Sequence record: MG655270.1
Strand: one strand, 5' to 3'
DNA length: 64,000 nucleotides
The translations under genes and the position numbers were made by a program. This document shows, piece after piece, positions 2,093-56,614 of the stretch; the first letter of the stretch is position 1, and each line of letters begins with the position of its first letter. The notes under the pieces are model-generated. The model had not been told where the DNA came from. It did no database searches and was given only the letters and a program-made list of their open reading frames with translations.

Positions 2093-4015
2093 ATGACAGA
2101 TAGCACTACAGCGCAGAGCCCGACCGTGACGTTAGACCAAGTCATCGCGTCAGGCGGCCAGATTGTCTTCCTGGACAATGGGCAACTGAAAAGCTTTCCT
2201 GTCTCTCAGATCACTGACTTACTGAAAAGCGGCATGTCTACTGACGTGTTGGGTCAGGCTGATTCTCTGAGTATGTTTGGTCAAGTGGAGTCGTTCGAGG
2301 CTCTACGTAAGCTTAAGCCACAGAAAGAAGGTGCACGCATCTCTCTTCGTGGCTGGAACAAAGGCAGTTGTCTGGGTGGCGGTGAGTTCATTGGTCATCT
2401 CGTCACCAAAGATCTTAAAGCCCGTCCAGATGATGGCGGTATGATTGCAGCCGGTAGCGGGTTCTTCTGGGAACGTGTGTGCTCAGATTGCGGGCAAATG
2501 AATGTCACTCACTTCGGTGCGCTTCCTGGCGCCACTGCAGCGACTGATTGCGTGCCAGCAATGACCGCCATGCTGAACTGGAGTAATGCCAACGCTGTTG
2601 GTTTAGGAATTCAATTCCCAGCCGGTACTTTCTTCGCTTCCAGTTTAAAGTTCACCAAAGAGATCGGGTATTTCCGTATCGCCGGTAACCACATCAACTT
2701 TGGTTATTTTGCTAACACGGTATTGGTGAGTGACGCTACTGAAAACTTTATGTTGGATGTTGCGGCCCGTCGGGTTGAGTTGGCAAACATCATCTTCCGC
2801 GGTGTGAGTACTACTGAGAAGCCGAATAAGAAAGGGATCTTTAATAACATCGTCATTGGTGGTCAGTACTTCAACATGACCTGTGTGCGGTTTGAGAAAA
2901 TCGGCGGGACCTGTGTTAATCTGATCGATACTCTCGATACCAAGATGACACAATGGTACGCGTCACAATGTACTGGTGATGTGATCGTTAACAAATGGTC
3001 CGATCGTCAGGCAGGTGGCTGGAACCATACCACTGCTGTTGAAATGACCAACTTTAACATCCAGAAGTGTGTTGGTGGTAAAGTGTTTGACATGCAGCGC
3101 TGCGCTCAGTCGTTTATCACTAATGGCTGGATCGAGCACTGTGATGATCCAGGCGACCTGTCTAATGGTCAATGGACGGTAAATGGCCTGAGTATCGAAG
3201 ATTGTAAGAAACCATTAAAGGCCTCTTACGCTCGCTTTATTGAGATCCAGCGTAACCTGCAGTCCGGGTCACGAATCGACTACTCCATTGACCCAGAGCT
3301 CGAAGAGTGGCTGAGTGAATGGGAACGCGGTCGTCTGGATATCGCCAACCACGGCATCTTCATCGACGGTACCTTAGAGCCGGGTACGATCATGTCTCGC
3401 AACAAGCTGAGCAACAGCAGCGACAAAGCGAAATGGTTCCGGGTCGGTACCTGGTACAGCCCATCTGAAGGCGACTCCATTGACCTCAACCTGGTTGGTA
3501 CTGGTAACTTCCTGTCGGTCGCACCAAAGCTTGATGATATCGATGGTGTGCGTCAAGGTGGCGGTAACACCCTGATCCGTGTGCAGTTGAAGAAAGACTC
3601 CGTAGGTGCGACCTTAGAACCACATGGTTCAAGTCCCCTGCAAGCGGCGAAGATTGCCAAAGTCGGTGCCGGTAAGTTTGTGATCTACGCCCAGCTGAAA
3701 CCGTATACCCGTAATGTGATCCCGGTGATTGTTGCAACCGGTGCCACGCACTACGAAGCCGGTGTCTCTTATTACTTCCGTCCGGCGATTGCCTCGATGA
3801 GTGATGAAGAGATCGCAGCAGTGCCGGATGCGGTGGTGATTGCTGAACAGTGGTCGCTCGGTCAACTGGCCGGTGTGGGCGCCACTAACGAAGGTAACCT
3901 GATGCTGAAGAGTAAGATCGTTAACGATCACTTGCAGGTACAGGTCATGGTTAGCCAAGCACAATGGGCGAAACCAGAACTTCGTTATATCGAGCTGAAG
4001 AAAGAAGCCAAGTAA
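2093..4015 (+). CDS. AmsF/WceF-like beta-helix protein (putative EPS depolymerase / tailspike-like)
   Basis: 640 aa; GQVESF..LR.LKP..EGARI.LRGW..G...GGGEF...DDGG.IA N-terminal module followed by parallel beta-helix-like repeats, as recalled for Erwinia AmsF-type proteins. Confidence 0.65.
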   Translation: MTDSTTAQSPTVTLDQVIASGGQIVFLDNGQLKSFPVSQITDLLKSGMSTDVLGQADSLSMFGQVESFEALRKLKPQKEGARISLRGWNKGSCLGGGEFIGHLVTKDLKARPDDGGMIAAGSGFFWERVCSDCGQMNVTHFGALPGATAATDCVPAMTAMLNWSNANAVGLGIQFPAGTFFASSLKFTKEIGYFRIAGNHINFGYFANTVLVSDATENFMLDVAARRVELANIIFRGVSTTEKPNKKGIFNNIVIGGQYFNMTCVRFEKIGGTCVNLIDTLDTKMTQWYASQCTGDVIVNKWSDRQAGGWNHTTAVEMTNFNIQKCVGGKVFDMQRCAQSFITNGWIEHCDDPGDLSNGQWTVNGLSIEDCKKPLKASYARFIEIQRNLQSGSRIDYSIDPELEEWLSEWERGRLDIANHGIFIDGTLEPGTIMSRNKLSNSSDKAKWFRVGTWYSPSEGDSIDLNLVGTGNFLSVAPKLDDIDGVRQGGGNTLIRVQLKKDSVGATLEPHGSSPLQAAKIAKVGAGKFVIYAQLKPYTRNVIPVIVATGATHYEAGVSYYFRPAIASMSDEEIAAVPDAVVIAEQWSLGQLAGVGATNEGNLMLKSKIVNDHLQVQVMVSQAQWAKPELRYIELKKEAK

Positions 4016-4040
4016 GGCAAGCGCGTTATACCGCTAACTG

Positions 4041-4070
4041 GAGGAGGGGATTCCCCTCCTCTTTATGCCG
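4041..4070 (+). terminator. Hairpin + TTATGCC terminator
   Basis: gaggagggg-att-cccctcctc-TTTATGCCG. Confidence 0.75.
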
Positions 4071-4074
4071 CCCT

Positions 4075-4105
4075 AGATTTTACCAGACCTATATTACCCT
4101 TGTGA
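4075..4105 (+). promoter_or_regulatory. Phage (probably early) promoter motif
   Basis: aga-ttttaccaga-CCTATATTAC-cctt-GTGA. Confidence 0.7.
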
Positions 4106-4188
4106 TTTCTGTAGAAATAAACGGAATCACCCAGTCTTATAACCCGCTGACCAAACCGAGTGTCGGCTAAACAAAAAGAGGAAATACC

Positions 4189-4890
4189 ATGACTACCCGT
4201 AAGATTGCTCGCTTAGACAAACTCGCTAAATTTGTAAACGACAATTTTGATCGTGATTACAACCTGCCATTTGCGATCGAGATCGAACAGCATGAAGATA
4301 AGTGGCACGGTGTTCGATACAGCCTCAACCTGACTCAGCCAGAGTGTGACGGTAGTCCTGTAAAAACGTTATTCCGTTCGAAGATGTTACCGGCTGAATT
4401 CGTTGGTGATCGGTTTACACGGCTAGAAGGCAGTGTGGCCGGAATGGCATCTGGGATTGAACTCCTGGGACAAGTTGCCTGGTACTGGATGTTATCAGGG
4501 GTAAACGGCAGTGATCGCGAATTGGGTGTGCAGGTAGCGTCGATGGCCTGGGATGCCTGGACACTGGCAACCGCCATATTTGATGGCTCTAAAGCCCGTG
4601 ATCTCTTCGAGCGTGACGATTTCCTTTGCCCTGGCGTAACACTGAATCAGCACGTCCTGTGCGAAAAGTTTGTCAGCATTGACCGCGAAGTATGGCTAAA
4701 GCGTCGCACTAAACTGCTCGATAATGCGGTGGTTATTGAAAGTCGTTGGACCTTCGTAAAACAATATATCGGGGCAGGTGGTCTGGGTCATGAAGAGAAA
4801 CACACTGTCGCCGAGGTCACCAAACGCAGGCAAGCACCCGCGCCTTTTGAAATTATCTTTAAGGCCAAATCGTCTCCTTTTAATCCATGA
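4189..4890 (+). CDS. Hypothetical protein
   Basis: 233 aa ORF, RBS gagga, follows promoter motif. Confidence 0.7.
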   Translation: MTTRKIARLDKLAKFVNDNFDRDYNLPFAIEIEQHEDKWHGVRYSLNLTQPECDGSPVKTLFRSKMLPAEFVGDRFTRLEGSVAGMASGIELLGQVAWYWMLSGVNGSDRELGVQVASMAWDAWTLATAIFDGSKARDLFERDDFLCPGVTLNQHVLCEKFVSIDREVWLKRRTKLLDNAVVIESRWTFVKQYIGAGGLGHEEKHTVAEVTKRRQAPAPFEIIFKAKSSPFNP

Positions 4891-4939
4891 GAATGAGGAG
4901 GGGGTTTCGACCTCCTCCATTATTGCTATTTTAAGTTGC

Positions 4940-4970
4940 AGAAAATCTAACGCCTACATTACTAATGGGA
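4940..4970 (+). promoter_or_regulatory. Phage promoter motif
   Basis: aga-aaatctaacg-CCTACATTAC-taat-GGGA. Confidence 0.7.
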
Positions 4971-5007
4971 TAGGCCTGATCAACAATTCTAATTAAGGGA
5001 ATTTGTA

Positions 5008-5478
5008 ATGAGTGAAATCACGTTTAAAGACGCGCGGTATTACGACCTGATTACCAAAGAACAATTGCAACCTGGACACACCATCCTGCTGAGCCTCAAA
5101 GGTCAACCAGCGGGTGTCATGACCCCAGCAGTACAGTGGGCTAAAGACAACCTGGAAAACACGGTCGTGGTGTACGGCACGGTTGACGATCTGCAATCAA
5201 TCCATAAAGAGATCAGTACTTGCGATCAACCGGTAGCTGTGGTCCTTACCGGCGGCTACCACGCAACGTATGAACTTACTCACTGGGCACGGGAAAACAA
5301 CGTAGTGGTGTTCCTGGCTTCAGATACCAATGCACCGCGTCCACGTTATGCGGTACTGCTCGGTACCTGTCTGATCCAGCTGACTTATGACCAGACTGGT
5401 CGAGTGAGTTCTGCTACCGCCATTCGTAATCAAGCAACCGCATCAGGCTGGGTGATCGACTTCACCGCTGACGCATAA
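5008..5478 (+). CDS. Hypothetical alpha/beta protein
   Basis: 156 aa; alternating beta-strand/helix pattern; RBS aaggga. Confidence 0.65.
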   Translation: MSEITFKDARYYDLITKEQLQPGHTILLSLKGQPAGVMTPAVQWAKDNLENTVVVYGTVDDLQSIHKEISTCDQPVAVVLTGGYHATYELTHWARENNVVVFLASDTNAPRPRYAVLLGTCLIQLTYDQTGRVSSATAIRNQATASGWVIDFTADA

Positions 5479-48039: not shown

Positions 48040-48113
48040 TGAACACCCGTTTTGGTAATTTATTACGTAGTTGATCAATTATAAGAGAGATATTGTTTAT
48101 TCGAGGGTGTTTC

Positions 48114-49634
48114 ATGGACAAGTTACCAAGTACCGCACTGCCAAAGGTGTCAATGGTTTTATACACCGATGGCGGTTGTCGTCAAAACATCGGAGGCTGG
48201 GGAATACATGGTTATTCCTGGCTGGTTGAAGACGATGACAAAAAGAAAAAGAAAAAGCCGGCGCGTGACGTCCCGTCAACGACTGGCTACATTGTAAAAG
48301 ACGATCCGAAACTCGACAGTCGTGAAGTGGTCAGGCCCCACGAAGTGATTGAAGGGTTTGGTGGTATTTTACCTAACACCACGAATAACGTTGCGGAACT
48401 TACGGCAACTATTAATGGTATTGACTTAGCACTGCAGCAGAACACAGAAAAGCTCCTCGTCATCTCCGATTCCAAATATGTCGGCGACAATGCAAAGAAC
48501 CAATTGCATCGTTGGATGAAAGCCGGCTGGAAGAAAGCGGATGGCGGGGATGTTGCCAACAAAGAGCTGTGGGAAACCCTCAGCAGCAAACTTGATGAGC
48601 TGAAGTATCGCGGCATCTCGTTTGACATCGAATGGCTGAAAGGGCATGCGGGCCACCGTGGAAATCAGTTCGCTGACTACATGGCAACCCGCGGTGTCTT
48701 TAAAGGCCGTGTTGGTGACGCTACCCCGTATTATCAGATCCAGGATGCCGGTGAGTACGATAAGTACAAAACCGAACGTCCGCGCTTTGTCACGCACTCG
48801 CGCTGGTACTTCACGTTACAGACTGAAAAGTTGATGAACAAGAATGAACAGGGCTTGTACGAGTATTGCTTTGGCCACCCAAGTAAAGGGGATGCTGATC
48901 AGCAGTACTTAGGCAAAGCGTTAGCCGACACCGCCTTTAGCGTGGTGTGGTTGAAAGCACCTGAAGAGTGTTTGGATCTGGTTTATTCACGCACCAAAGA
49001 GATCGCTACCGACGTTTACGGTAACGCCTTCATTGGTCGCCTGGATAACATTTACAACTCATTCATTCACAAAGAGATCATGGACTACGGCGGGTCGTTA
49101 TTGCAACGTGCGAATAAGTACAACAATGACATCACCAACTGTACCGATGCTCAAGTGGTGCGTGAGTGTAACCCGCCAGGTATCTCTTACCGGGCACTGT
49201 CGAATTTAGGACAGCTTAGTAAGATCCTGAATGAATTTGTCAGCGACAGTTTACCTGTGACAACCAGGGTGGTAGAGATTACTGACAAAATCTACCAGAC
49301 CGTGAAAGGTAAGAAAGAAGATAAGCTGGCATTGCTCGGTTCGATTCGTCAAACCGACAAAGCGCTCAAGTTCGATGTACCGTGTGATGTACTCGACAAA
49401 GCGATCTCCGTCGAAGTTACAGCCACGCTTGGATTGACCTTACCCAACCGTAATACGTTAAACGGTCTTACGGAACTCAATCCAAAGGTATACCTGTTCT
49501 TGACAAAAGAGTCCGACATTGCATTTCGCTACGGATCGATTGTGGTATGCGATGAAGGGTATTGCATCATGGCCAACGTATACGCTGACCTGCGTACGCT
49601 GTCAAAAAAGGATCTGGAGCGTTGCGGGCAGTAA
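48114..49634 (+). CDS. rnhA: Ribonuclease HI with C-terminal extension (phiKZ-type)
   Basis: YTDGGC, TTNNVAEL.A, SDSKYV, WLKGHAG..GN..AD. Confidence 0.9.
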   Translation: MDKLPSTALPKVSMVLYTDGGCRQNIGGWGIHGYSWLVEDDDKKKKKKPARDVPSTTGYIVKDDPKLDSREVVRPHEVIEGFGGILPNTTNNVAELTATINGIDLALQQNTEKLLVISDSKYVGDNAKNQLHRWMKAGWKKADGGDVANKELWETLSSKLDELKYRGISFDIEWLKGHAGHRGNQFADYMATRGVFKGRVGDATPYYQIQDAGEYDKYKTERPRFVTHSRWYFTLQTEKLMNKNEQGLYEYCFGHPSKGDADQQYLGKALADTAFSVVWLKAPEECLDLVYSRTKEIATDVYGNAFIGRLDNIYNSFIHKEIMDYGGSLLQRANKYNNDITNCTDAQVVRECNPPGISYRALSNLGQLSKILNEFVSDSLPVTTRVVEITDKIYQTVKGKKEDKLALLGSIRQTDKALKFDVPCDVLDKAISVEVTATLGLTLPNRNTLNGLTELNPKVYLFLTKESDIAFRYGSIVVCDEGYCIMANVYADLRTLSKKDLERCGQ

Positions 49635-49644
49635 AGGGTGACTT

Positions 49645-50001
49645 GTGACCACGTTATTCGCCGGTGCACCAACCAAGCTTCCGATGATGGACCTGTCTGC
49701 GATCATTGATCCAGATAAGGATATCGAGTCTCGGCTTAAACGGAAACTGTTATTAACTTTCGTTTGTCATTGTCGTCGTCCTCGTGCGAGTGCAGATGAG
49801 CTTAACCGCACACATGCACTATGCGAGGACTCGGCAGACGTTGAGCAGTGTCTTGATTACATCTCGCGCATGGGTCCTGAGTTCAGTGAAGCTTACGATG
49901 GTGTTGATCTTGAATGTGTGATGGATATCATCGGGCGCACGCCTGAATGGCTCCGTTACGGATCTGCTATTGAAATGTGGACAGACCTCAAGCAGTTGTA
50001 G
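49645..50001 (+). CDS. Hypothetical protein
   Basis: 118 aa, GTG start. Confidence 0.55.
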   Translation: MTTLFAGAPTKLPMMDLSAIIDPDKDIESRLKRKLLLTFVCHCRRPRASADELNRTHALCEDSADVEQCLDYISRMGPEFSEAYDGVDLECVMDIIGRTPEWLRYGSAIEMWTDLKQL

Positions 50002-50050
50002 GGCATAAGAGGAGGGCGTGAGCCCTCCTCTACTTTATGCTGCTTTTTTT
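50002..50050. terminator. Bidirectional terminator with the TTATGC motif on both strands
   Basis: GGCATAA-gaggagggc-gtga-gccctcctc-tac-TTTATGCTG between convergent genes. Confidence 0.8.
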
Positions 50051-50847
50051 TATTTGACTTCTTTTGCCAACTTCACTGCAGTGTTGTTCAGTGCCGTTCC
50101 TGTTGAAATGAACAGGGTATGACAAACACTATAGAGATCAGCCGCACGGGCCGTAGACAGCAGCGTCTTCGCCAGGTTGTCGATATCAGCCTTACTGAGT
50201 ACCAGTTCGCCAGACTCAATCTGACTGAAGACCAGATCAGACAGTTCCGCCACGCGTTTCACCGCCAGGTTGAAGTTGTAGATCTGCCCGCGCTTTAACA
50301 TCGCCACGAGCTTATTAAAGTCAGTGTAGACGTTGGTGAATTCCGTCAGGTTCGGGAAACGGGCGGCGAAGCTGATATCAGTGACATCTTTTCCACCCAG
50401 CGATTTACCTAACATTGCTTCCACTTTACCCAGGATAGCCTTGTCCACGTTCGGGGCGTACGCGACACTGGCATTACCCGCAGAGACACCCGCGAGCCAA
50501 GAGTGCAGCTTACTGATGTGGGTCGACTCCAGCATGGTGCAGAAAGCCCGGGCGGTTGCCAGGTTCTCAACCCATTCTTGATAGCTGACATTCAGACGCG
50601 CCGGTTGATAGATCGTGCGATCCATGAAGTCGGTGTAGTTGTGCGATGCCAGCGCTTTGGATAACGGGCTGAGGTCAGCGGTGATCAGATCCTGTGCAGT
50701 ACCATACGCACGATCGCTGAAGAACTTCTTAATGCCATCAAAGAAGTTGCGGATGGGGGCAATAATGTTTAATGCTTCGAGGCCGGCACCGGTTGACTCA
50801 CGCAGTTCCTGGTAGTCGGCTTCGAGGTTTTCAATGTTGTACGACAT
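50050..50847 (-). CDS. Putative virion head protein with propeptide
   Basis: AGLE-A motif at about residue 22; position next to uvsX as in phiKZ-like genomes. Confidence 0.6.
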   Translation of the reverse strand: MSYNIENLEADYQELRESTGAGLEALNIIAPIRNFFDGIKKFFSDRAYGTAQDLITADLSPLSKALASHNYTDFMDRTIYQPARLNVSYQEWVENLATARAFCTMLESTHISKLHSWLAGVSAGNASVAYAPNVDKAILGKVEAMLGKSLGGKDVTDISFAARFPNLTEFTNVYTDFNKLVAMLKRGQIYNFNLAVKRVAELSDLVFSQIESGELVLSKADIDNLAKTLLSTARAADLYSVCHTLFISTGTALNNTAVKLAKEVK

Positions 50848-50928
50848 ATGTACTCCGTGAGATAAAAGTAATCTGTTACATAAGATGACTTATTATGAAG
50901 GTATTATTAATTAAAAGGACCGCACACA

Positions 50929-52314
50929 ATGTTGTCATTCGGTGAATTTGTTGAGAAGTCACGCCCTATTCGACCTTTCTTGAATATCGGCGCGGGCTTT
51001 GATATCCCAACCGGTAGCTATCGTTTCGGTAAGCACGGTGAATCTATTCTTAATGGTGGTCTGGCGCCATTCATTGCGATCGTTGGTAAAGGCAACACCT
51101 TTAAAACAGCGATCGGTTGTTTCATGATGACCCGCGTGCTGGAGCGCTACAATAACTCTAACGGTCTCCACTACGATACCGAGTGTACGTTCAGTGCCGA
51201 TCGTCTTACCAGTCTTACCAGTCGTCTGGGTCCGAATGCTGCTGCAGAGTGGCTGGCCAACGAACGTATCTACCTGACTGATGACTCCATCATTAAAGGT
51301 AACCAGTGGTTTAAGAAATCGGTGCAGGAATACTCCGAAGCGAAGAAGAAAGCCAAAATGGGCACGCTGCCGTTTGTGGATAAAGATGGGAACTTAATCC
51401 CGTATCCATACCCGACAGTCAACTTTGGCGATTCCATGTCTGAGATGAAATTCGACGATCTGGAAAAGAACTACGCCAAGATGGAAATCGGCCAGGGTGA
51501 AATGCAAACGGAAGCCATGCGTGTGTCGAATGCCAAACGCATGTTAATCGAAAAGACCCAGGGTTACGCCAACGCCGGCGGCATGTATGTCATCATGACA
51601 GCGCACTTAGGTAAAGAGCTGAACATGGATGGTAAACCACAAGAGAAGAAAACCACCTTTATGAAACAAGGTGACAAAATCTCTAAGGTGCCTTCACAGA
51701 TCCTCTCTCTGCCAAACAACGCCTGGGAGATCTCTACCGGTACGGTGTTGATTGATAAGAACACCAAAGAGTGGATGTACCCGAAACAGGGTCGCAACGA
51801 CGTGGATACCAACGGTAACCCGGACATGATCACTCTGGTGGCGAAGAACCTGCGCGGGAAGAATGGCCCGTCTGGTGTGCCGTGGGAATTCGTGATGTCA
51901 CAGTCTGAAGGCCTGCTGCCGTCCCTGACTGAGTTCCATTACATTAAGAACAACGGCCGTTACGGCCTGGGTGGCAATGACCGTAATTATTATGTTGAAT
52001 TGTGCCCAGATATCAAGCTGCAGCGCACCACCGTGCGTGATCGCATCGACGACAACCCTGAGTTACGTCGGGCATTAGAGATCACCATGGAGATGTGTCA
52101 GATGCGTTTCCTGTGGCACACCCGCGATCCAAAGTACAACATGACTCCTCAGGAACTGCGTGAAGGCCTGGAGAAGAAAGGGTACAAATGGGATCAGCTG
52201 CTCAACACCCGTGGGTTCTGGACGTTTGAAGAAGACAACCATCCATTACCATTCTTAAGCACAATGGATCTACTCCGCATGTATCATGATGAGTATCGCC
52301 CATACTGGCTGTAA
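50929..52314 (+). CDS. uvsX: UvsX/RecA-like recombinase (phiKZ-type)
   Basis: LNIGAGFDIPTG, IVGKGNTFKT Walker A, HYDTE, DS.S, KN.RG.NG. Confidence 0.8.
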   Translation: MLSFGEFVEKSRPIRPFLNIGAGFDIPTGSYRFGKHGESILNGGLAPFIAIVGKGNTFKTAIGCFMMTRVLERYNNSNGLHYDTECTFSADRLTSLTSRLGPNAAAEWLANERIYLTDDSIIKGNQWFKKSVQEYSEAKKKAKMGTLPFVDKDGNLIPYPYPTVNFGDSMSEMKFDDLEKNYAKMEIGQGEMQTEAMRVSNAKRMLIEKTQGYANAGGMYVIMTAHLGKELNMDGKPQEKKTTFMKQGDKISKVPSQILSLPNNAWEISTGTVLIDKNTKEWMYPKQGRNDVDTNGNPDMITLVAKNLRGKNGPSGVPWEFVMSQSEGLLPSLTEFHYIKNNGRYGLGGNDRNYYVELCPDIKLQRTTVRDRIDDNPELRRALEITMEMCQMRFLWHTRDPKYNMTPQELREGLEKKGYKWDQLLNTRGFWTFEEDNHPLPFLSTMDLLRMYHDEYRPYWL

Positions 52315-52394
52315 GTGTACCCACTGTGGGAGAGGGTTATCCCTCTCCTTCTTATACCGTCAGTAGAGGGAAATAAGCTAATAGGAAGCAGTAT

Positions 52395-52814
52395 ATGCTT
52401 AACAAAGAAATACGCATTGTCGTTGCGTCGACTAAAGGTTTCAACGACGCAGAGCGTTTAAAACTGACTATTGACGGCCTCCTGGAAGATATCTATTACC
52501 TCAACGAAGGGGTAGGTGATGAGGACGAGGAGTTGATCACTGATGCCAAGATCGTTTTCATCACCAATGGCGAACACAAAACAGCGGCTGAGTTGCTGCC
52601 TGGTGTGTTGGGTGATCGGAACATCGACATCGAAGTGATCAAGGTTGATTGGTCAAAAGGTAAGAAAGCGTTTTTTGATAACTGCGCTGTATTGGGTGCG
52701 AAGTCGACCCACGGCGTCATTTTTACGGACAGCAAAGATGACGGGATGCAGACACTGCTGAAAGCATGTCTCGATGCCGGCTCACGCGTTCGTACTTATA
52801 GCTCTGCTATTTGA
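52395..52814 (+). CDS. Degenerate YspA-like SLOG protein
   Basis: IVV.S..GFND, I.VDW..GK.A, VIF.D....G..L..A; lacks GAD and RN residues. Confidence 0.6.
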   Translation: MLNKEIRIVVASTKGFNDAERLKLTIDGLLEDIYYLNEGVGDEDEELITDAKIVFITNGEHKTAAELLPGVLGDRNIDIEVIKVDWSKGKKAFFDNCAVLGAKSTHGVIFTDSKDDGMQTLLKACLDAGSRVRTYSSAI

Positions 52815-52828
52815 GAAAGGTAACCCCC

Positions 52829-53275
52829 ATGATAGCCTCAGAAGCTCACGTTAGTATACTTGACGTTAATGTCACCCACGTTATATGCACAGTTAATTGC
52901 GAAGGGCATATGGGTCGTGGCATAGCCTTGTATCTGCGTAAGTGTATTCCGGGGCTATATGAGCGGTATAAACACCTGTGCAGTTTAGGGATCATCACGG
53001 TAGACAAACTCTGGATCTACCCATCACACCCCCGTCAGATTCTCTGCTTTCCAACCAAAGATAAAACCTGGGAAGACAGCAAGCTTGAATGGATCGAAGC
53101 CAATCTCATAAAGCTTCGTGACAACTACAAAACAAAAGGCATTGTCTCTGTGGCGATGCCTCCTCTTGGATGTGGAAACGGTAACCTAAAGTGGGATGAG
53201 GTGCGGAGCCTCATTTATGCCATCTTGGGCGATTGTGACCTTGAAGTCCACATCTGTTTAGGTAAACCGAAGTGA
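52829..53275 (+). CDS. DarG/TARG1-type macro domain ADP-ribosylhydrolase
   Basis: TVNC.G.MG.GIA, FPTK..W..S..EWI, SVAMP.LGCGNG.L.W..V. Confidence 0.85.
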   Translation: MIASEAHVSILDVNVTHVICTVNCEGHMGRGIALYLRKCIPGLYERYKHLCSLGIITVDKLWIYPSHPRQILCFPTKDKTWEDSKLEWIEANLIKLRDNYKTKGIVSVAMPPLGCGNGNLKWDEVRSLIYAILGDCDLEVHICLGKPK

Positions 53276-53304
53276 GGGAAACACCCTGAATAGGAGCCAG
53301 TATT

Positions 53305-54186
53305 ATGTCTGATAACGCACGCGTTTTACCCGATCCACGCGAAGATGGCAAGACGCACATCAACGTCTATAGCCGTGGCGCTTCCTGGTTAGGACAGCAA
53401 CTTTCTAATATGTCCTACTACGACTTCGCACATCCACGCTACGGCGTGTTCGCCTCGTTGGAGGGCTTCTGGTATTGGTTGTCTACGGGCAAGCAACACG
53501 AGGAGTTACGGAAGCTTGCCGGGGTCAAAGCGAAAATGACCGGCCGGGAGTTCGAGACGATCCCAAATGAAAACTTTGAAGAAGAGTTCAAAGAAGCCAT
53601 GCGTCTGCGTCTGGAGCAACACCCGATCATTGCTAACGCCCTGGCTGAATCGTTACTGCCGTTAAAGCACTACTATTGTTACGGTGGGAAAGTGATCGAC
53701 TTGTATGACCGCCACAAATGGCAGATGGACTTCTACGAGGAGTGGCGTAAAGCCAATGCCCCCGAAGACACCACCTTGGTATTGTTGATCTCTGGCTCAC
53801 GTAAAGAGAAAGACTACGACGCCTTTAAGCACATCGTGATGACCTACCTGCAACCGTATATCGACAAGATAAAGGACACGTACAAAATCACCCTGCTTTC
53901 GGGGCTCGCCTGGGAAGGTCCCGATGACATGGCAATTCGTCTGTGTCGGGAAGAAGGCTTCATGTTGATTGGTCTGCCGGCTAAGTGGAAAGAGCAAGGC
54001 AAAGCCGCGGGCATGATCCGTAATGGTGCCATGGGGCGGTTGTGTAACAAGGCTCTGGTGTTCTGGGATGGCGAATCACCGGGGACAAAAGGGATGATTG
54101 ATTACCTGAAGAAAAATACTATAGACCATCTTGTGTATTTACACGGTAAACATGAACCTGACTGGAAAGCCCCGGAGACATCATGA
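53305..54186 (+). CDS. NADAR-like domain fused to a YspA-like SLOG domain
   Basis: N-term HIN.YS.G..LG..LSN....F.SLEG.W...G..AK..GR; C-term ISGSR..DY, SG.A..GPD, A.W...GK.AG.IRN, FWDG.S.GT..MI. Confidence 0.7.
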   Translation: MSDNARVLPDPREDGKTHINVYSRGASWLGQQLSNMSYYDFAHPRYGVFASLEGFWYWLSTGKQHEELRKLAGVKAKMTGREFETIPNENFEEEFKEAMRLRLEQHPIIANALAESLLPLKHYYCYGGKVIDLYDRHKWQMDFYEEWRKANAPEDTTLVLLISGSRKEKDYDAFKHIVMTYLQPYIDKIKDTYKITLLSGLAWEGPDDMAIRLCREEGFMLIGLPAKWKEQGKAAGMIRNGAMGRLCNKALVFWDGESPGTKGMIDYLKKNTIDHLVYLHGKHEPDWKAPETS

Positions 54187-54857
54187 CCCCAGCACGCGAA
54201 CAGACCCAGCAATTTGTGATCGAGGCTATTGCTGAGATTCTCCCCGGTTCTAAGAACCGGGATATCTATATCGACTTCTTCTCGCGGTTGAGCGATGAGG
54301 CGTTTGATGCCCTGATGCAGCGGATGGATGAAGACCAGGAGATCTTCCCCTTCTACCATCCGAACTTTACCGGCACGGTAATTGATGTTGAACGTGTGAT
54401 CAAGTTAATTGAAAAGCACGGCGACACCATCATGGAGCAGCTCTGGGATATCGACCCGGAAACCGGACTGCAGTACCTGACTCCATTGAAGTATCCGGTG
54501 CTGTTACTTCCGCTGCGTATTCAGCAGCAGAAGCTGCAGAAGAAGATGTCGATTCCAAAAGACAACAACCACATCGACGATCTGACTAACCAGCCCACCA
54601 CCGAATCCAAAGGGGCTTCTTTGTCTTACCCGGAAGTGCAGATCATCTATGCCATGGGTGGTGACAAGATTCTGGAAGAGACCATGAAGGTCCGTGGTGG
54701 TGATGAGAAGGCGTTTCGTGATTACAATAACGAAATCATTGCAAGCGGCGGTGTCACCATTGGTGCAATCAGCAGCAGCAAGACCAAGGTGAAGTCCACC
54801 AAAACCGTGCAAGTGATTCTTGAGGCCATGCACCTGAGCAACAACCTGGCCAGTTAA
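54183..54857 (+). CDS. Virion RNA polymerase beta subunit, C-terminal fragment (phiKZ gp149-like)
   Basis: QQQKL.KK.SIP.....DDLT.QPT..SKG..LS.PE.Q...A.G....L.E..KVRGGD parallels the beta C-terminus. Confidence 0.8.
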   Translation: MTPAREQTQQFVIEAIAEILPGSKNRDIYIDFFSRLSDEAFDALMQRMDEDQEIFPFYHPNFTGTVIDVERVIKLIEKHGDTIMEQLWDIDPETGLQYLTPLKYPVLLLPLRIQQQKLQKKMSIPKDNNHIDDLTNQPTTESKGASLSYPEVQIIYAMGGDKILEETMKVRGGDEKAFRDYNNEIIASGGVTIGAISSSKTKVKSTKTVQVILEAMHLSNNLAS

Positions 54858-54866
54858 GGATGCAAC

Positions 54867-55427
54867 ATGAGTAGCTTGATAAACAACCTGACCGGTAAAA
54901 ACAAAGTTGAGTTCAGCCCGATTGATCTTGACAGTGAAGTCGAGCGGGTTGTCTCTGAGTATGTCGGTACATACTTACGCAACCGTATCTTTCTGGCGGC
55001 GCAATCGAAGATACCGGTGAATGAAGACCCGGGGTATCTGCAGATTGTAAACTTCTTGGCGTTGGTCAACATGGAGTTCAACCATATGCGCATGTGGTCT
55101 ACGTCTGACATGACCAATACCGTCTGGCCGCAGATCGTTGAAGATGAGTATGTGTTGCGCTTTGTGTTTAAAGGCACTACCCATGTCAGTGTGCGGTGCT
55201 TTGATGGCGACGTACCCTTTCAGAAACTGGTCGACCACGTGGCCGGTTCTCTAAGCTGCATGTCGCACGGCGGAAATGAAATCATCGCAGCAGCGTTAAC
55301 CCAGGTCCTGCCACGCAATGACGAACTGGTTGAGCTCTTTACCGGTAACCAATGGTCGTTGTTCATTTATTACCTGACGCGCATTAACATCATTGAGATT
55401 GTGACCAATTCGGGAGGTAGTGTATAA
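54867..55427 (+). CDS. Conserved core hypothetical protein
   Basis: 186 aa, tightly coupled in core operon. Confidence 0.65.
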   Translation: MSSLINNLTGKNKVEFSPIDLDSEVERVVSEYVGTYLRNRIFLAAQSKIPVNEDPGYLQIVNFLALVNMEFNHMRMWSTSDMTNTVWPQIVEDEYVLRFVFKGTTHVSVRCFDGDVPFQKLVDHVAGSLSCMSHGGNEIIAAALTQVLPRNDELVELFTGNQWSLFIYYLTRINIIEIVTNSGGSV

Positions 55428-56155
55428 TGGTGGGCGGAGATCGTATTGGGTGTTACGTCCCCCTGGATGCTTTGTTGGATACCCGTATCGGGGTCATTGA
55501 CCAAGTGGCCGGGGAAGTAGGATTGGAGTTGGTTAAGTCATGGTACCATACTCGCACGGCTGATCGCTTTGACCGAAAAGGCACACCGTTAACGCAGGCG
55601 GCATATCAGGCAGCCTGGGCCGCCCGCAGTGAAGAGACCTTAAAGCGTACACGCATGACCTTTGTGCCGATGTACCTGATGAACCTGATCAGTCGCTTTA
55701 ACACCTCACACGGCATGCCGATCATGGCCGCAACCTACAACATCACGGTGAACACGTATCCGTATCGGTTATCCGATGAGCGCAAAGAACAACTGCAGAA
55801 GATCATCGAAACGTACACGTCGGGCATTGCTGAAATCACCATTGACTATATCAGTCCAGCAGACCTGACTGTCGAGTACGTGAAGGCGAACTACTCCGTG
55901 TGCATCATGTATGAGTTTGATGAATGGTTGATGTTGCATAAAGACGAGTTCAGCCAGACCCAGATGCCCGGGACCGTAATCCTGGCACCTAAGTTGTATC
56001 TGGCGGATGTGGGGGAAGATGTGATTAAGCGGGCAGAGCAGACCGATGGCTTTGCAGGCCTGAGCCTGGCACTCTGTGCATTGGTGACAGTGGTGTTCCT
56101 GGATGTAAGGTTGTTCTCTTATGTCACAGACACACCACCGAATCTGGATGAGTGA
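55427..56155 (+). CDS. Conserved core hypothetical protein (HAD-like fold possible)
   Basis: YVPLDALLDTR at N terminus. Confidence 0.65.
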   Translation: MVGGDRIGCYVPLDALLDTRIGVIDQVAGEVGLELVKSWYHTRTADRFDRKGTPLTQAAYQAAWAARSEETLKRTRMTFVPMYLMNLISRFNTSHGMPIMAATYNITVNTYPYRLSDERKEQLQKIIETYTSGIAEITIDYISPADLTVEYVKANYSVCIMYEFDEWLMLHKDEFSQTQMPGTVILAPKLYLADVGEDVIKRAEQTDGFAGLSLALCALVTVVFLDVRLFSYVTDTPPNLDE

Positions 56156-56614
56156 TTACTTCTTTTCGCCGCCTGGGTTCATGATATCATCGTACTCGAT
56201 GTGTTCACTGCCTTGACGGGTCTCACCTGCTTTAAACTCCGGGACCGGTAACTGACTGGCATCCGGGGTTGGAGCAGGGACGGCGGCAATCGAGGTGTCT
56301 GCACCTTCACCACGCAGGGCAAAACCACCGGCAGCCAACACTTGCTTAACTGCACCGATGATAACAGCACCTTGCGCTTCGTCGTTCTCTTGGGCTTTCT
56401 GCTCAAGGTCAAGACGTTGACGGTTAATGATGGATTTGTCGATATCACCCATCGCGGTCAGGGCGATCTTCAACATCTTCGGGTCTTGTCGGGAGGCCTT
56501 GATGGGAGCACCGGACTCAGAGTCCTTCTCATCAAGGATATCTTCGACAATCCCTAACCGTCGCATTTGCATACGACGCATCAAGGCCGCATCGTCTAAT
56601 TCATAATCAGCCAT
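56156..56614 (-). CDS. Hypothetical protein
   Basis: Start reassigned to MADYEL after ggagg. Confidence 0.65.
   Translation of the reverse strand: MADYELDDAALMRRMQMRRLGIVEDILDEKDSESGAPIKASRQDPKMLKIALTAMGDIDKSIINRQRLDLEQKAQENDEAQGAVIIGAVKQVLAAGGFALRGEGADTSIAAVPAPTPDASQLPVPEFKAGETRQGSEHIEYDDIMNPGGEKK

Follow-up and report, generated by a model that had tools for sequence, protein, structure and literature searches.

Three genes packed on one strand between uvsX and a virion RNA polymerase (vRNAP) gene of Erwinia phage vB_EamM_Mortimer are best explained as a module that removes ADP-ribose (ADPr) from phage DNA inside the phage nucleus, an explanation to which we give a probability of about 0.55. 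The cluster lies in a 64,000-nucleotide stretch of sequence record MG655270.1 (the window), and the phage is a jumbo phage, a RAY/Ea35-70-like member of the genus Agricanvirus within the nucleus-forming Chimalliviridae. The genes encode a motif-eroded SLOG domain, an orphan macrodomain of the DarG type, and a NADAR domain fused to an intact SLOG domain:

52395..52814, plus strand: gene 1, 139 amino acids; ortholog of RAY gp151; stand-alone, motif-eroded paralog of the YAcAr-type SLOG
52829..53275, plus strand: gene 2, 148 amino acids from its ATG; ortholog of RAY gp152; orphan DarG2-type macrodomain, homolog of AdfM
53305..53769, plus strand: N-terminal domain of gene 3 (amino acids 1 to 155); ortholog of RAY gp153; divergent NADAR of the His type
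53770..54186, plus strand: C-terminal domain of gene 3 (amino acids ~156 to 293); intact SLOG, probably of the YAcAr type (DprA-like)

The cluster would act as an accessory counter-defense island, set in a variable slot between core genes, whose enzymes strip ADPr from phage DNA inside the nucleus. The macrodomain of gene 2 would hydrolyze ADPr on thymidine of single-stranded DNA (ssDNA) and thereby neutralize DarT2-type toxins. The His-type NADAR of gene 3 would most likely cleave N-glycosidic ADPr-base adducts, by default those of guanine made by DarT1 and possibly those of other bases. The intact SLOG most likely provides binding or targeting, with ssDNA and the recombination machinery as one possible object and the ADPr or nucleotide moiety as the other, and the eroded SLOG of gene 1 would be its noncatalytic partner. 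The substrates of the NADAR clade, the roles of both SLOG domains, and the cooperation of the genes are what we infer in this scheme.

A sequence-only reading of the window had already proposed three tightly packed genes here, and the listing of open reading frames (ORFs) agrees with it and puts all three on the same strand, gene 3 running from 53305 to 54186 and encoding 293 amino acids. The same reading called the cluster a possible complete kit for erasing DNA ADP-ribosylation, which was overstated: ADP-ribosylation of adenine, cytidine, and RNA exists too. All three are real genes under purifying selection. The region from 52000 to 54600 is 98 to 99.8% identical to that of 16 other Ea35-70/RAY-like Agricanvirus records, and genes 1 to 3 are 98 to 100% conserved across 17 Agricanvirus records. 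Compared with phage AH06 (84% identical), the ratios of nonsynonymous to synonymous substitution rates are 0.11 for gene 1, 0.08 for gene 2, and 0.06 for gene 3; therefore, all three, including the eroded gene 1, are kept by selection. The ORF of gene 2 (52811 to 53275) opens with a TTG at 52811, and its true start is likely the ATG at 52829, giving 148 amino acids, because the RAY annotation and the homologs start there. Programmed read-through from gene 2 into gene 3 is ruled out, as the frames differ and a stop codon and a 29-nucleotide spacer intervene.

Gene 2 encodes a macrodomain with the DarG-type lysine that had been noticed in its FPTK motif. It matches the Pfam Macro model at 1.2e-9, the macro part (positions 8 to 145 of 338) of the NCBIfam DarG model at an E value of 1.4e-37, and the PADLOC DarG model at 8.6e-41. 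In a PDB sequence search, its closest solved relatives are the DarG macrodomains 5M3I (1.1e-22) and 5M31 (8.5e-21), whereas TARG1 reached 3e-6 and ADP-ribose-1''-phosphatases only 0.16 to 0.5. The FPTK motif, which holds the catalytic lysine (K80 in Taq DarG), is in register with the FPTK of both DarG structures. Against the full-length DarG model the protein scores 130 bits where the cut-off is 250; it is 148 amino acids long, and its neighbors are SLOG and NADAR genes. Gene 2 lacks the DarT-binding half of DarG and is therefore an orphan macrodomain.

Orphan macrodomains of this kind have recently been studied in other chimalliviruses. In 2026, AdfM (PhiKZ gp104 and its PhiPA3 and Asesino homologs) was found to be imported into the phage nucleus; the PhiKZ protein strips DarT2-made ADPr off DNA, rescues DarT2 toxicity, and is required for growth on DarTG2 hosts, mutation of its N23 lowers activity, and AdfM is present in about half of chimalliviruses (PMC13309987). 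Genetic evidence indicates that T4 Tk.4 protects against DarTG2 (PMC13716836). Gene 2 resembles these proteins of PhiKZ, PhiPA3, Asesino, and T4 in being an orphan DarG2-type macrodomain (~150 to 165 amino acids) with no DarT-binding domain and with the catalytic asparagine and lysine kept, and it shares 33 to 34% identity with the AdfM of PhiKZ and Asesino, likewise chimallivirus encoded. Gene 2 is 34% identical (E value, 1e-20) to Asesino gp217, the sole macro gene found in the Asesino genome, which we take to be the AdfM studied in PMC13309987. Both the asparagine of TVN (PhiKZ AdfM N23) and the lysine of PTK are invariant in an alignment of gene 2 with PhiKZ gp104 and Asesino gp217. We therefore place gene 2 in the AdfM family, and by analogy with these homologs it probably has their activity. 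Unlike AdfM, gene 2 adjoins uvsX and is linked (fused, in relatives) to NADAR and SLOG, whereas the genes for PhiKZ gp104 and Asesino gp217 stand by themselves at other places in their genomes, and neither SLOG nor NADAR genes could be detected next to them. Like the DarG proteins of DarTG1 and DarTG2 systems taken together, the cluster combines the hydrolase types known for thymidine-ADPr (macro) and for guanine-ADPr (NADAR); unlike them, it is phage encoded and orphan, with no DarT toxin as a neighbor and no DarT-binding domain.

Gene 3 begins with a NADAR domain, and the LSN...SLEG stretch that had suggested this assignment is the true active-site region. The call is made because of a profile-profile match, a confident structural model that hits the NADAR structure 8BAU, and an invariant catalytic glutamate. 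A profile of 146 sequences trimmed to the domain matched a YbiA-type NADAR profile, built from an alignment in which every member is PF08719 positive, at 96.1% (E value, 3.3e-9) in hhalign. The domain profile matched T4 gp30.3 alone at 87.9% (E value, 3.6e-7; 134 columns), an 11-sequence profile matched YbiA alone at 87.9%, and pairwise BLAST of the N terminus against T4 gp30.3 was marginal (E value, 0.003). The AlphaFold2 model of gene 3 has a mean predicted local distance difference test score (pLDDT) of 90.6, with values above 90 across the N-terminal domain. It contains a hairpin (41 to 49), five helices (52 to 115), a second hairpin (123 to 132), and a C-terminal helix, an order that agrees with the published NADAR/YbiA fold. 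In a Foldseek search of the PDB with gene 3, the sole non-Rossmannoid match was 8BAU, a Phytophthora NADAR-ADP-ribose complex (probability, 1.00; target-normalized template modeling score, 0.52; 174 columns). The fold check that the sequence-only reading had proposed thus gave no sign of a non-NADAR fold. An NCBIfam scan of gene 3 returned no NADAR match, PDB sequence searches with genes 3 and 1 gave no meaningful matches, and PADLOC matched neither gene.

The clade to which this NADAR belongs has many members. When 1.84 billion proteins were searched with its profile, 2025 representative clusters were recovered at an E value of 1e-3 or less, and tblastn found the domain in 535 phage records, among them Ackermannviridae and several groups of jumbo phages; none of the 60 of these records that were listed is a T5-like or rV5-like phage. 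Among the best 146 members, 9 matched Phage_30_3 and 4 matched NADAR (best E value, 7e-4), matches that may fall outside the domain in fusion proteins. Other domains detected in these 146 were the YAcAr SLOG (29 members), DUF4326 (24), the DprA model (16), DUF488-N3a (7), and Macro (4). Single members of the clade are fused to BRCT, to a pyrimidine-dimer DNA glycosylase, to RNase T or Rv2179c-like exonucleases, and to GIY-YIG/I-TevI-type domains, so that several of the fusion partners are of the DNA-repair type.

Three determinants have been described for NADARs: a glutamate that coordinates the distal ribose (Pn E43, EcC7 E88, T4 E36, and YbiA E48); a lysine that binds phosphate and adenine (Pn K50, EcC7 K95, T4 K43, and YbiA K55), is called essential for efficient hydrolysis, and can be substituted in vitro by arginine; and, in the final strand, a charged residue, which is Glu in the YbiA type, Asp in the DarT1-linked type, and His in the phage gp30.3 type (PMC11543638, PMC11125620). 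Two of the three are present in the gene 3 domain. E53 aligns with the catalytic glutamate in every comparison and is the sole fully invariant residue of the clade (146/146), and H122 (143/146) aligns with T4 H124, itself aligned to the glutamate of YbiA LVEHT. By this alignment, the domain reads as a His-type, gp30.3-like NADAR. K77 (140/146) and R/K81 stand as far apart as the two residues of the pyrophosphate pair in Pn (K75/R79), and this motif spacing suggests that K77/R81 may be its counterpart.

T4 gp30.3, which the sequence-only reading had correctly cited as a NADAR that counters DarT1, is AdfN and is both necessary and sufficient against DarTG1, and two unrelated phage NADARs (Bas32 and Bas60) counter DarT1, not DarT2 (PMC11825919). 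All NADAR subfamilies tested so far hydrolyze guanine-ADPr DNA (PMC11125620, PMC11825919), and some NADARs also remove cytidine-ADPr (PMC12945103). With AdfN (T4 gp30.3; Phage_30_3) and the NADAR superfamily (YbiA and DarG1; 8BAU, 8BAT, and 2B3W), the gene 3 domain shares the fold, the catalytic glutamate, and the C-terminal helix, and with the gp30.3-type phage NADARs it shares the last-strand histidine. It differs from them in escaping the Pfam NADAR and Phage_30_3 hidden Markov models (HMMs), in the loss of the canonical lysine, in its fusion to SLOG, and in the near-invariant motifs of its own clade (DG-THIN-YS, WYW, and LP-HYY). From the DarT1-linked NADARs it also differs by the absence of their typical N-terminal extension and by a histidine, not an aspartate, in the last strand. 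Mainly because the canonical lysine is missing, we do not assume that substrate or efficiency equals that of AdfN. A role as an eraser of DNA ADPr is plausible for the domain.

The C-terminal domain of gene 3 belongs securely to the SLOG superfamily and probably to the YAcAr/DUF2493 family. The motifs GSR, SGxAxxGxD, AGxIRN, and WDGxSxGT are all present, in keeping with the intact SLOG expected from the sequence. The protein matches phrog_289 at 1.1e-20, and the C terminus scores 22 to 25 bits against Pfam YAcAr, under the cut-off of 28.2. In Foldseek the C terminus matches ShosA (8ZVA), DprA (3UQZ/4LJK), the ThsA SLOG (8BTP and 7UXS), and LOG, and it also resembles dozens of viral models labeled "YspA cpYpsA-related SLOG/DUF2493" (YAcAr). 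The relationship between YAcAr and DprA that we draw on is based on the fold and motif comparison made here. DprA/Smf and ShosA are the best solved folds for this domain and share with it the SG-A-G-D, RN, and G-T loop motifs and an association with a recombinase (RecA-family) gene. Unlike DprA/Smf, gene 3 has the Rossmannoid core only, with no SAM-like domain and no room for a C-terminal winged helix; its N terminus is a NADAR, and sequence places its C terminus in YAcAr/DUF2493.

Gene 1, noted at first sight as a degenerate SLOG, has replaced nearly all residues of these motifs: GSR by STK, SGxAxGxD by TNGEHKTAAE, IRN by FDN, and WDGxSxGT by FTDSKDDGM. Its family nevertheless aligned with the gene 3-type SLOG profile at 95.9% (E value, 6.4e-9; 124 columns) in hhalign, and gene 1 matched phrog_289 at 1.6e-6 and Pfam YAcAr at an E value of 0.19. 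The AlphaFold2 model of gene 1 is weak (pLDDT, 67) and has the alternating strand-helix order of the gene 3 SLOG; we did not use it as evidence for a SLOG. A fold search was nonspecific, returning generic Rossmannoid proteins, with YpsA (2NX2) at rank 15. Genes of this type occur in 21 phage records, each beside a Macro-linked SLOG. Although its motifs are eroded, the gene is conserved and under purifying selection, a combination in keeping with a pseudo-enzyme partner.

A role of the SLOG as a sensor of NAD or ADPr is speculative, and targeting to ssDNA fits at least as well. A DprA-like module directed to ssDNA or UvsX is an option because DarT modifies ssDNA, DprA and the DprA-like ShosA rank first among the structural matches, and in Serratia phage Moabite a homologous lone SLOG adjoins UvsX. 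Binding or processing of ADPr or a nucleotide is an option given the prediction made in parts of the Aravind-lab surveys and the resemblance to the ThsA SLOG. Taken to its full extent, the first option would make the YAcAr SLOG a DprA-like ssDNA/UvsX-targeting module rather than a nucleotide sensor, one that brings two different base-ADPr glycohydrolases to ssDNA at recombination-dependent replication intermediates in the nucleus, with gene 1 as the paired pseudo-enzyme subunit; this extended version is a tentative proposal that we consider improbable. If it were true, the removal of lesions would be tied physically to recombinational restart, and the base specificity of the His-type, Lys-less NADAR clade could differ from that of the AdfNs that have been tested.

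How the domains have been combined becomes visible when the stretch that separates UvsX from the vRNAP beta piece is compared across related phages. This interval is bounded by two core genes:

50929..52314, plus strand: UvsX-like recombinase, upstream flank, RAY gp150; matches phrog_97 at 1.8e-56
54183..54857, plus strand: vRNAP beta piece, downstream flank, RAY gp154; matches phrog_3233 at 1.7e-99

The start of the vRNAP beta piece, a gene present in 290 phage records, overlaps the stop of gene 3 by 4 nucleotides. With SLOG* denoting the eroded SLOG of the gene 1 type, the Agricanvirus architecture is SLOG*/Macro/NADAR-SLOG, to which AH06 adds two extra small ORFs. In pEa_SNUABM_37/48, SLOG* is followed by one 429-amino-acid Macro-NADAR-SLOG protein, and in Proteus phage 10 it is followed by a 276-amino-acid Macro-SLOG protein with no NADAR. 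Salmonella phage SA002 has the fusion in two pieces, owing to a 590-bp tandem direct duplication of 98.3% identity. The SA002 repeats (locus coordinates ~3842 to 4431 and 4432 to 5021) duplicate the end of the macrodomain and the NADAR, leaving ORFs of 290 and 326 amino acids; this is either a recent event or an assembly artifact. From the four architectures it follows that the constant core in this clade is the eroded SLOG, the Macro, and the intact SLOG, with the NADAR as an insertable module. The fusions are classical Rosetta-stone evidence for a joint function of the macro, NADAR, and SLOG parts.

More distant chimalliviruses fill the slot differently. That of Moabite holds a small ORF and a stand-alone DprA-like SLOG (locus coordinates 3619 to 4113), which is homologous to the C terminus of gene 3 (99.1%; E value, 5e-19). 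A Moabite member of the NADAR clade, annotated as an "N-glycosidase" (locus coordinates 2498 to 2998), lies ~60 kb from this SLOG; therefore, the domains fused in gene 3 are unlinked there. The slots of the PhiKZ-like phage SL2 and of Asesino contain small unrelated ORFs only, and their AdfM genes lie elsewhere. None of the small ORFs in the slots of Asesino, SL2, Moabite, and AH06 proved related to genes 1 to 3. The two AH06 ORFs (locus coordinates 3161 to 3508 and 4393 to 4677; 115 and 94 amino acids) lie around the gene 3 ortholog, and the 94-amino-acid one is annotated as an "RNA binding protein"; neither has a significant Pfam match or resembles genes 1 to 3 or the small ORFs that other phages carry in the slot. 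Overall, the slot carries one to three unrelated genes, depending on the genus, inside a conserved core block of RNase H, a small ORF, a minus-strand ORF, UvsX, the slot, and the vRNAP beta piece. Beside UvsX, the intact SLOG may be of longer standing.

The adjacency to uvsX, which had been read as a link to the restart of stalled forks, is real and is kept in all four cluster architectures. Because the interval is a variable slot in chimalliviruses, this adjacency may, but need not, tie the cluster functionally to fork restart. Universal conservation in nucleus-forming phages, offered in the sequence-only reading as the sign of a housekeeping role, is not what we found: gp153 is accessory, and the slot varies across chimalliviruses.

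RAY gp153 is 100% identical to the gene 3 product, and it has been localized. Tagged with green fluorescent protein, it co-localizes with phage DNA, probably inside the phage nucleus, and it is one of two nuclear proteins that lie outside the chimallivirus core genome; the authors of that study named it "DprA" and filed it with UvsX under recombination (PMC10299810). With gp153 located at the phage DNA, DNA adducts are a likelier target than soluble signals in the cytoplasm, and its place outside the core genome makes the cluster accessory, as a counter-defense role predicts.

Several points weigh against a nuclear eraser of DNA ADPr. Pfam NADAR (PF08719) found no match, even at an E value of 10 or less, in gene 3, in its isolated N-terminal half, or in seven close homologs, and Pfam Phage_30_3 (PF08010) found none in gene 3 itself. 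The column of the canonical lysine is occupied by S60 in gene 3 and, across the 146 members of the clade, by S in 51, G in 26, A in 22, and K in 18. The fold assigned to gene 1 comes from a single line of evidence, profile comparison, and the activities ascribed to the three proteins are those of homologs in other phages. Among gp151 to gp153, nuclear localization is known for gp153 alone. DarTG is rare in the Erwinia amylovora pangenome (PMC13480210), which makes the selective agent in the natural host uncertain. Finally, the Aravind-lab surveys, in the parts that bear on phage Macro, NADAR, and SLOG domains, favor soluble ADPr derivatives as their targets (PMC9503650, PMC7824862).

The last of these points leads to the most probable of the alternatives, although we consider it improbable: Macro, NADAR, and SLOG would share the task of degrading diffusible ADPr-derived immune signals or toxins, such as the cyclic ADP-ribose isomers of Thoeris-type systems or ADPr-1''-phosphate, with the SLOG either sensing these molecules or cleaving the ribosyl-adenine bond. 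Parts of the surveys of Iyer, Burroughs, and Aravind make this prediction for exactly this domain set (PMC9503650, PMC7824862), and the gene 3 SLOG model resembles both the SLOG of ThsA that binds glycocyclic ADP-ribose (8BTP and 7UXS) and LOG enzymes. Fusions of the NADAR family to DUF4326 and DUF488, predicted processors of phosphates or nucleotides, are frequent, and loss of the canonical lysine could reflect a non-DNA substrate. However, the macrodomain is of the DarG type, its chimallivirus and T4 homologs act on DNA, and all NADARs tested so far de-ADP-ribosylate DNA bases. Localization points the same way, as gp153 is nuclear with the phage DNA while the host signal producers and effectors are cytoplasmic.

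It is less probable still that gp153 is mainly a DprA-like ssDNA mediator that loads UvsX, with gene 1 as a second subunit and with secondary NADAR and macro functions that contribute little to defense evasion. The RAY authors' classification of gp153 as a recombination "DprA" seen with phage DNA (PMC10299810) agrees with such a role, as do DprA and DprA-like ShosA being the best solved folds of the SLOG and the homologous lone SLOG beside UvsX in the Moabite slot. Chimalliviruses are without an obvious UvsY, and parts of one survey suggest DprA-like SLOGs as substitutes (PMC7824862). Against such a role, the gene is accessory, and PhiKZ-like phages and Asesino have no SLOG in the slot. The other domains of DprA are absent, and members of the clade are closer to the YAcAr than to the DprA HMM (29 versus 16 of 146). 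The strictly conserved catalytic residues of the NADAR and macrodomain also argue that the enzymes matter.

Cleanup of RNA-repair by-products, with the macrodomain as an ADP-ribose-1''-phosphate phosphatase and the NADAR clearing ADPr derivatives of NAD-dependent tRNA or RNA repair, would accommodate the GenBank labels of gene 2 ("phosphatase" or "Appr-1-p processing") and the NADARs that accompany RNA-repair systems in some genomes, but it is very unlikely given that the macrodomain matches DarG far better than ADP-ribose-1''-phosphatase structures (1e-22 versus 0.16 to 0.5), that core genes stand on both sides with no RNA ligase, KptA, or 2H neighbors, and that the RAY RtcB homolog is cytoplasmic (PMC10299810) whereas gp153 is nuclear.

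Several features of the surrounding DNA concern the expression of the cluster. The leaders of gene 1 (52366 to 52394) and gene 3 (53275 to 53303) share GAGGGAAA, followed by AATAGGA(A/G)(G/C)CAGTAT abutting the ATG. The motif has two matches in the window versus 0.27 expected, and two were reached in 5 of 100 shuffles; it is marginally nonrandom and may serve both genes as an element of translation initiation or regulation, or have arisen by chance. A weak terminator-like hairpin (52332 to 52347; 5-bp stem and T-rich tail) follows the uvsX stop and precedes gene 1, and the region from 50000 to 56500 contains 11 terminator-like sites, compared with 5.6 ± 2.3 in shuffles. The cluster may be a separate transcription unit; a promoter scan around it gave a count not above the shuffled expectation. 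Farther upstream, positions 48093 to 49634 encode a 513-amino-acid protein whose N-terminal 200 residues include an RNase H domain (Pfam, 3.6e-25). The long C-terminal extension of this protein matches nothing in Pfam, and chimalliviruses conserve it (phrog_3265, 3e-186).

The associations described here extend published ones. Parts of two surveys from 2021 and 2022 (Iyer, Burroughs, and Aravind; PMC7824862, PMC9503650) catalogued how Macro, NADAR, SLOG, and DUF4326 occur together or fused in the genomes of jumbo phages and giant viruses, and the domain combination and the division of labor among ADPr-processing domains given there are those of this cluster. Those parts of the surveys favor soluble ADPr signals, whereas our comparison, together with the AdfM and AdfN experiments, points to DNA adducts in the nucleus. 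The eroded SLOG partner, the series of split, fused, and NADAR-less forms, and the UvsX slot apparently do not figure in the parts of the surveys that treat these domains. T4 carries both eraser types, AdfN and AdfM, at separate loci (PMC13716836); therefore, a phage that covers both DarT chemistries is not new. As far as we found, three things are new: the physical linkage, in a nucleus-forming phage, of both erasers to two SLOG domains, one intact and one eroded; the split, fused, and NADAR-less series at one locus; and a His-type, Lys-less NADAR clade that is very widespread in phages.

DNA ADP-ribosylation by DarT is a recently recognized antiphage defense, and AdfN (2025) and AdfM (2026) have been shown to be phage countermeasures; the AdfM work established that the phage nucleus alone is no shield for chimallivirus DNA (PMC13309987). 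The locus described here pairs both eraser types, in relatives within one polypeptide, and ties them to SLOG domains whose viral role is still a prediction. To a specialist it would be unsurprising, and it offers a good system for the role of the viral YAcAr SLOG. The architecture series (split, fused, NADAR-less, and SLOG alone) is suited to probing the function of these domains and the coupling of erasure to recombination. The locus could also address whether the NADAR clade, found in 535 phage records, erases ADPr from DNA even without the canonical lysine. For fire-blight biocontrol, the choice of Erwinia phages would be affected, since host DarTG could otherwise restrict them.

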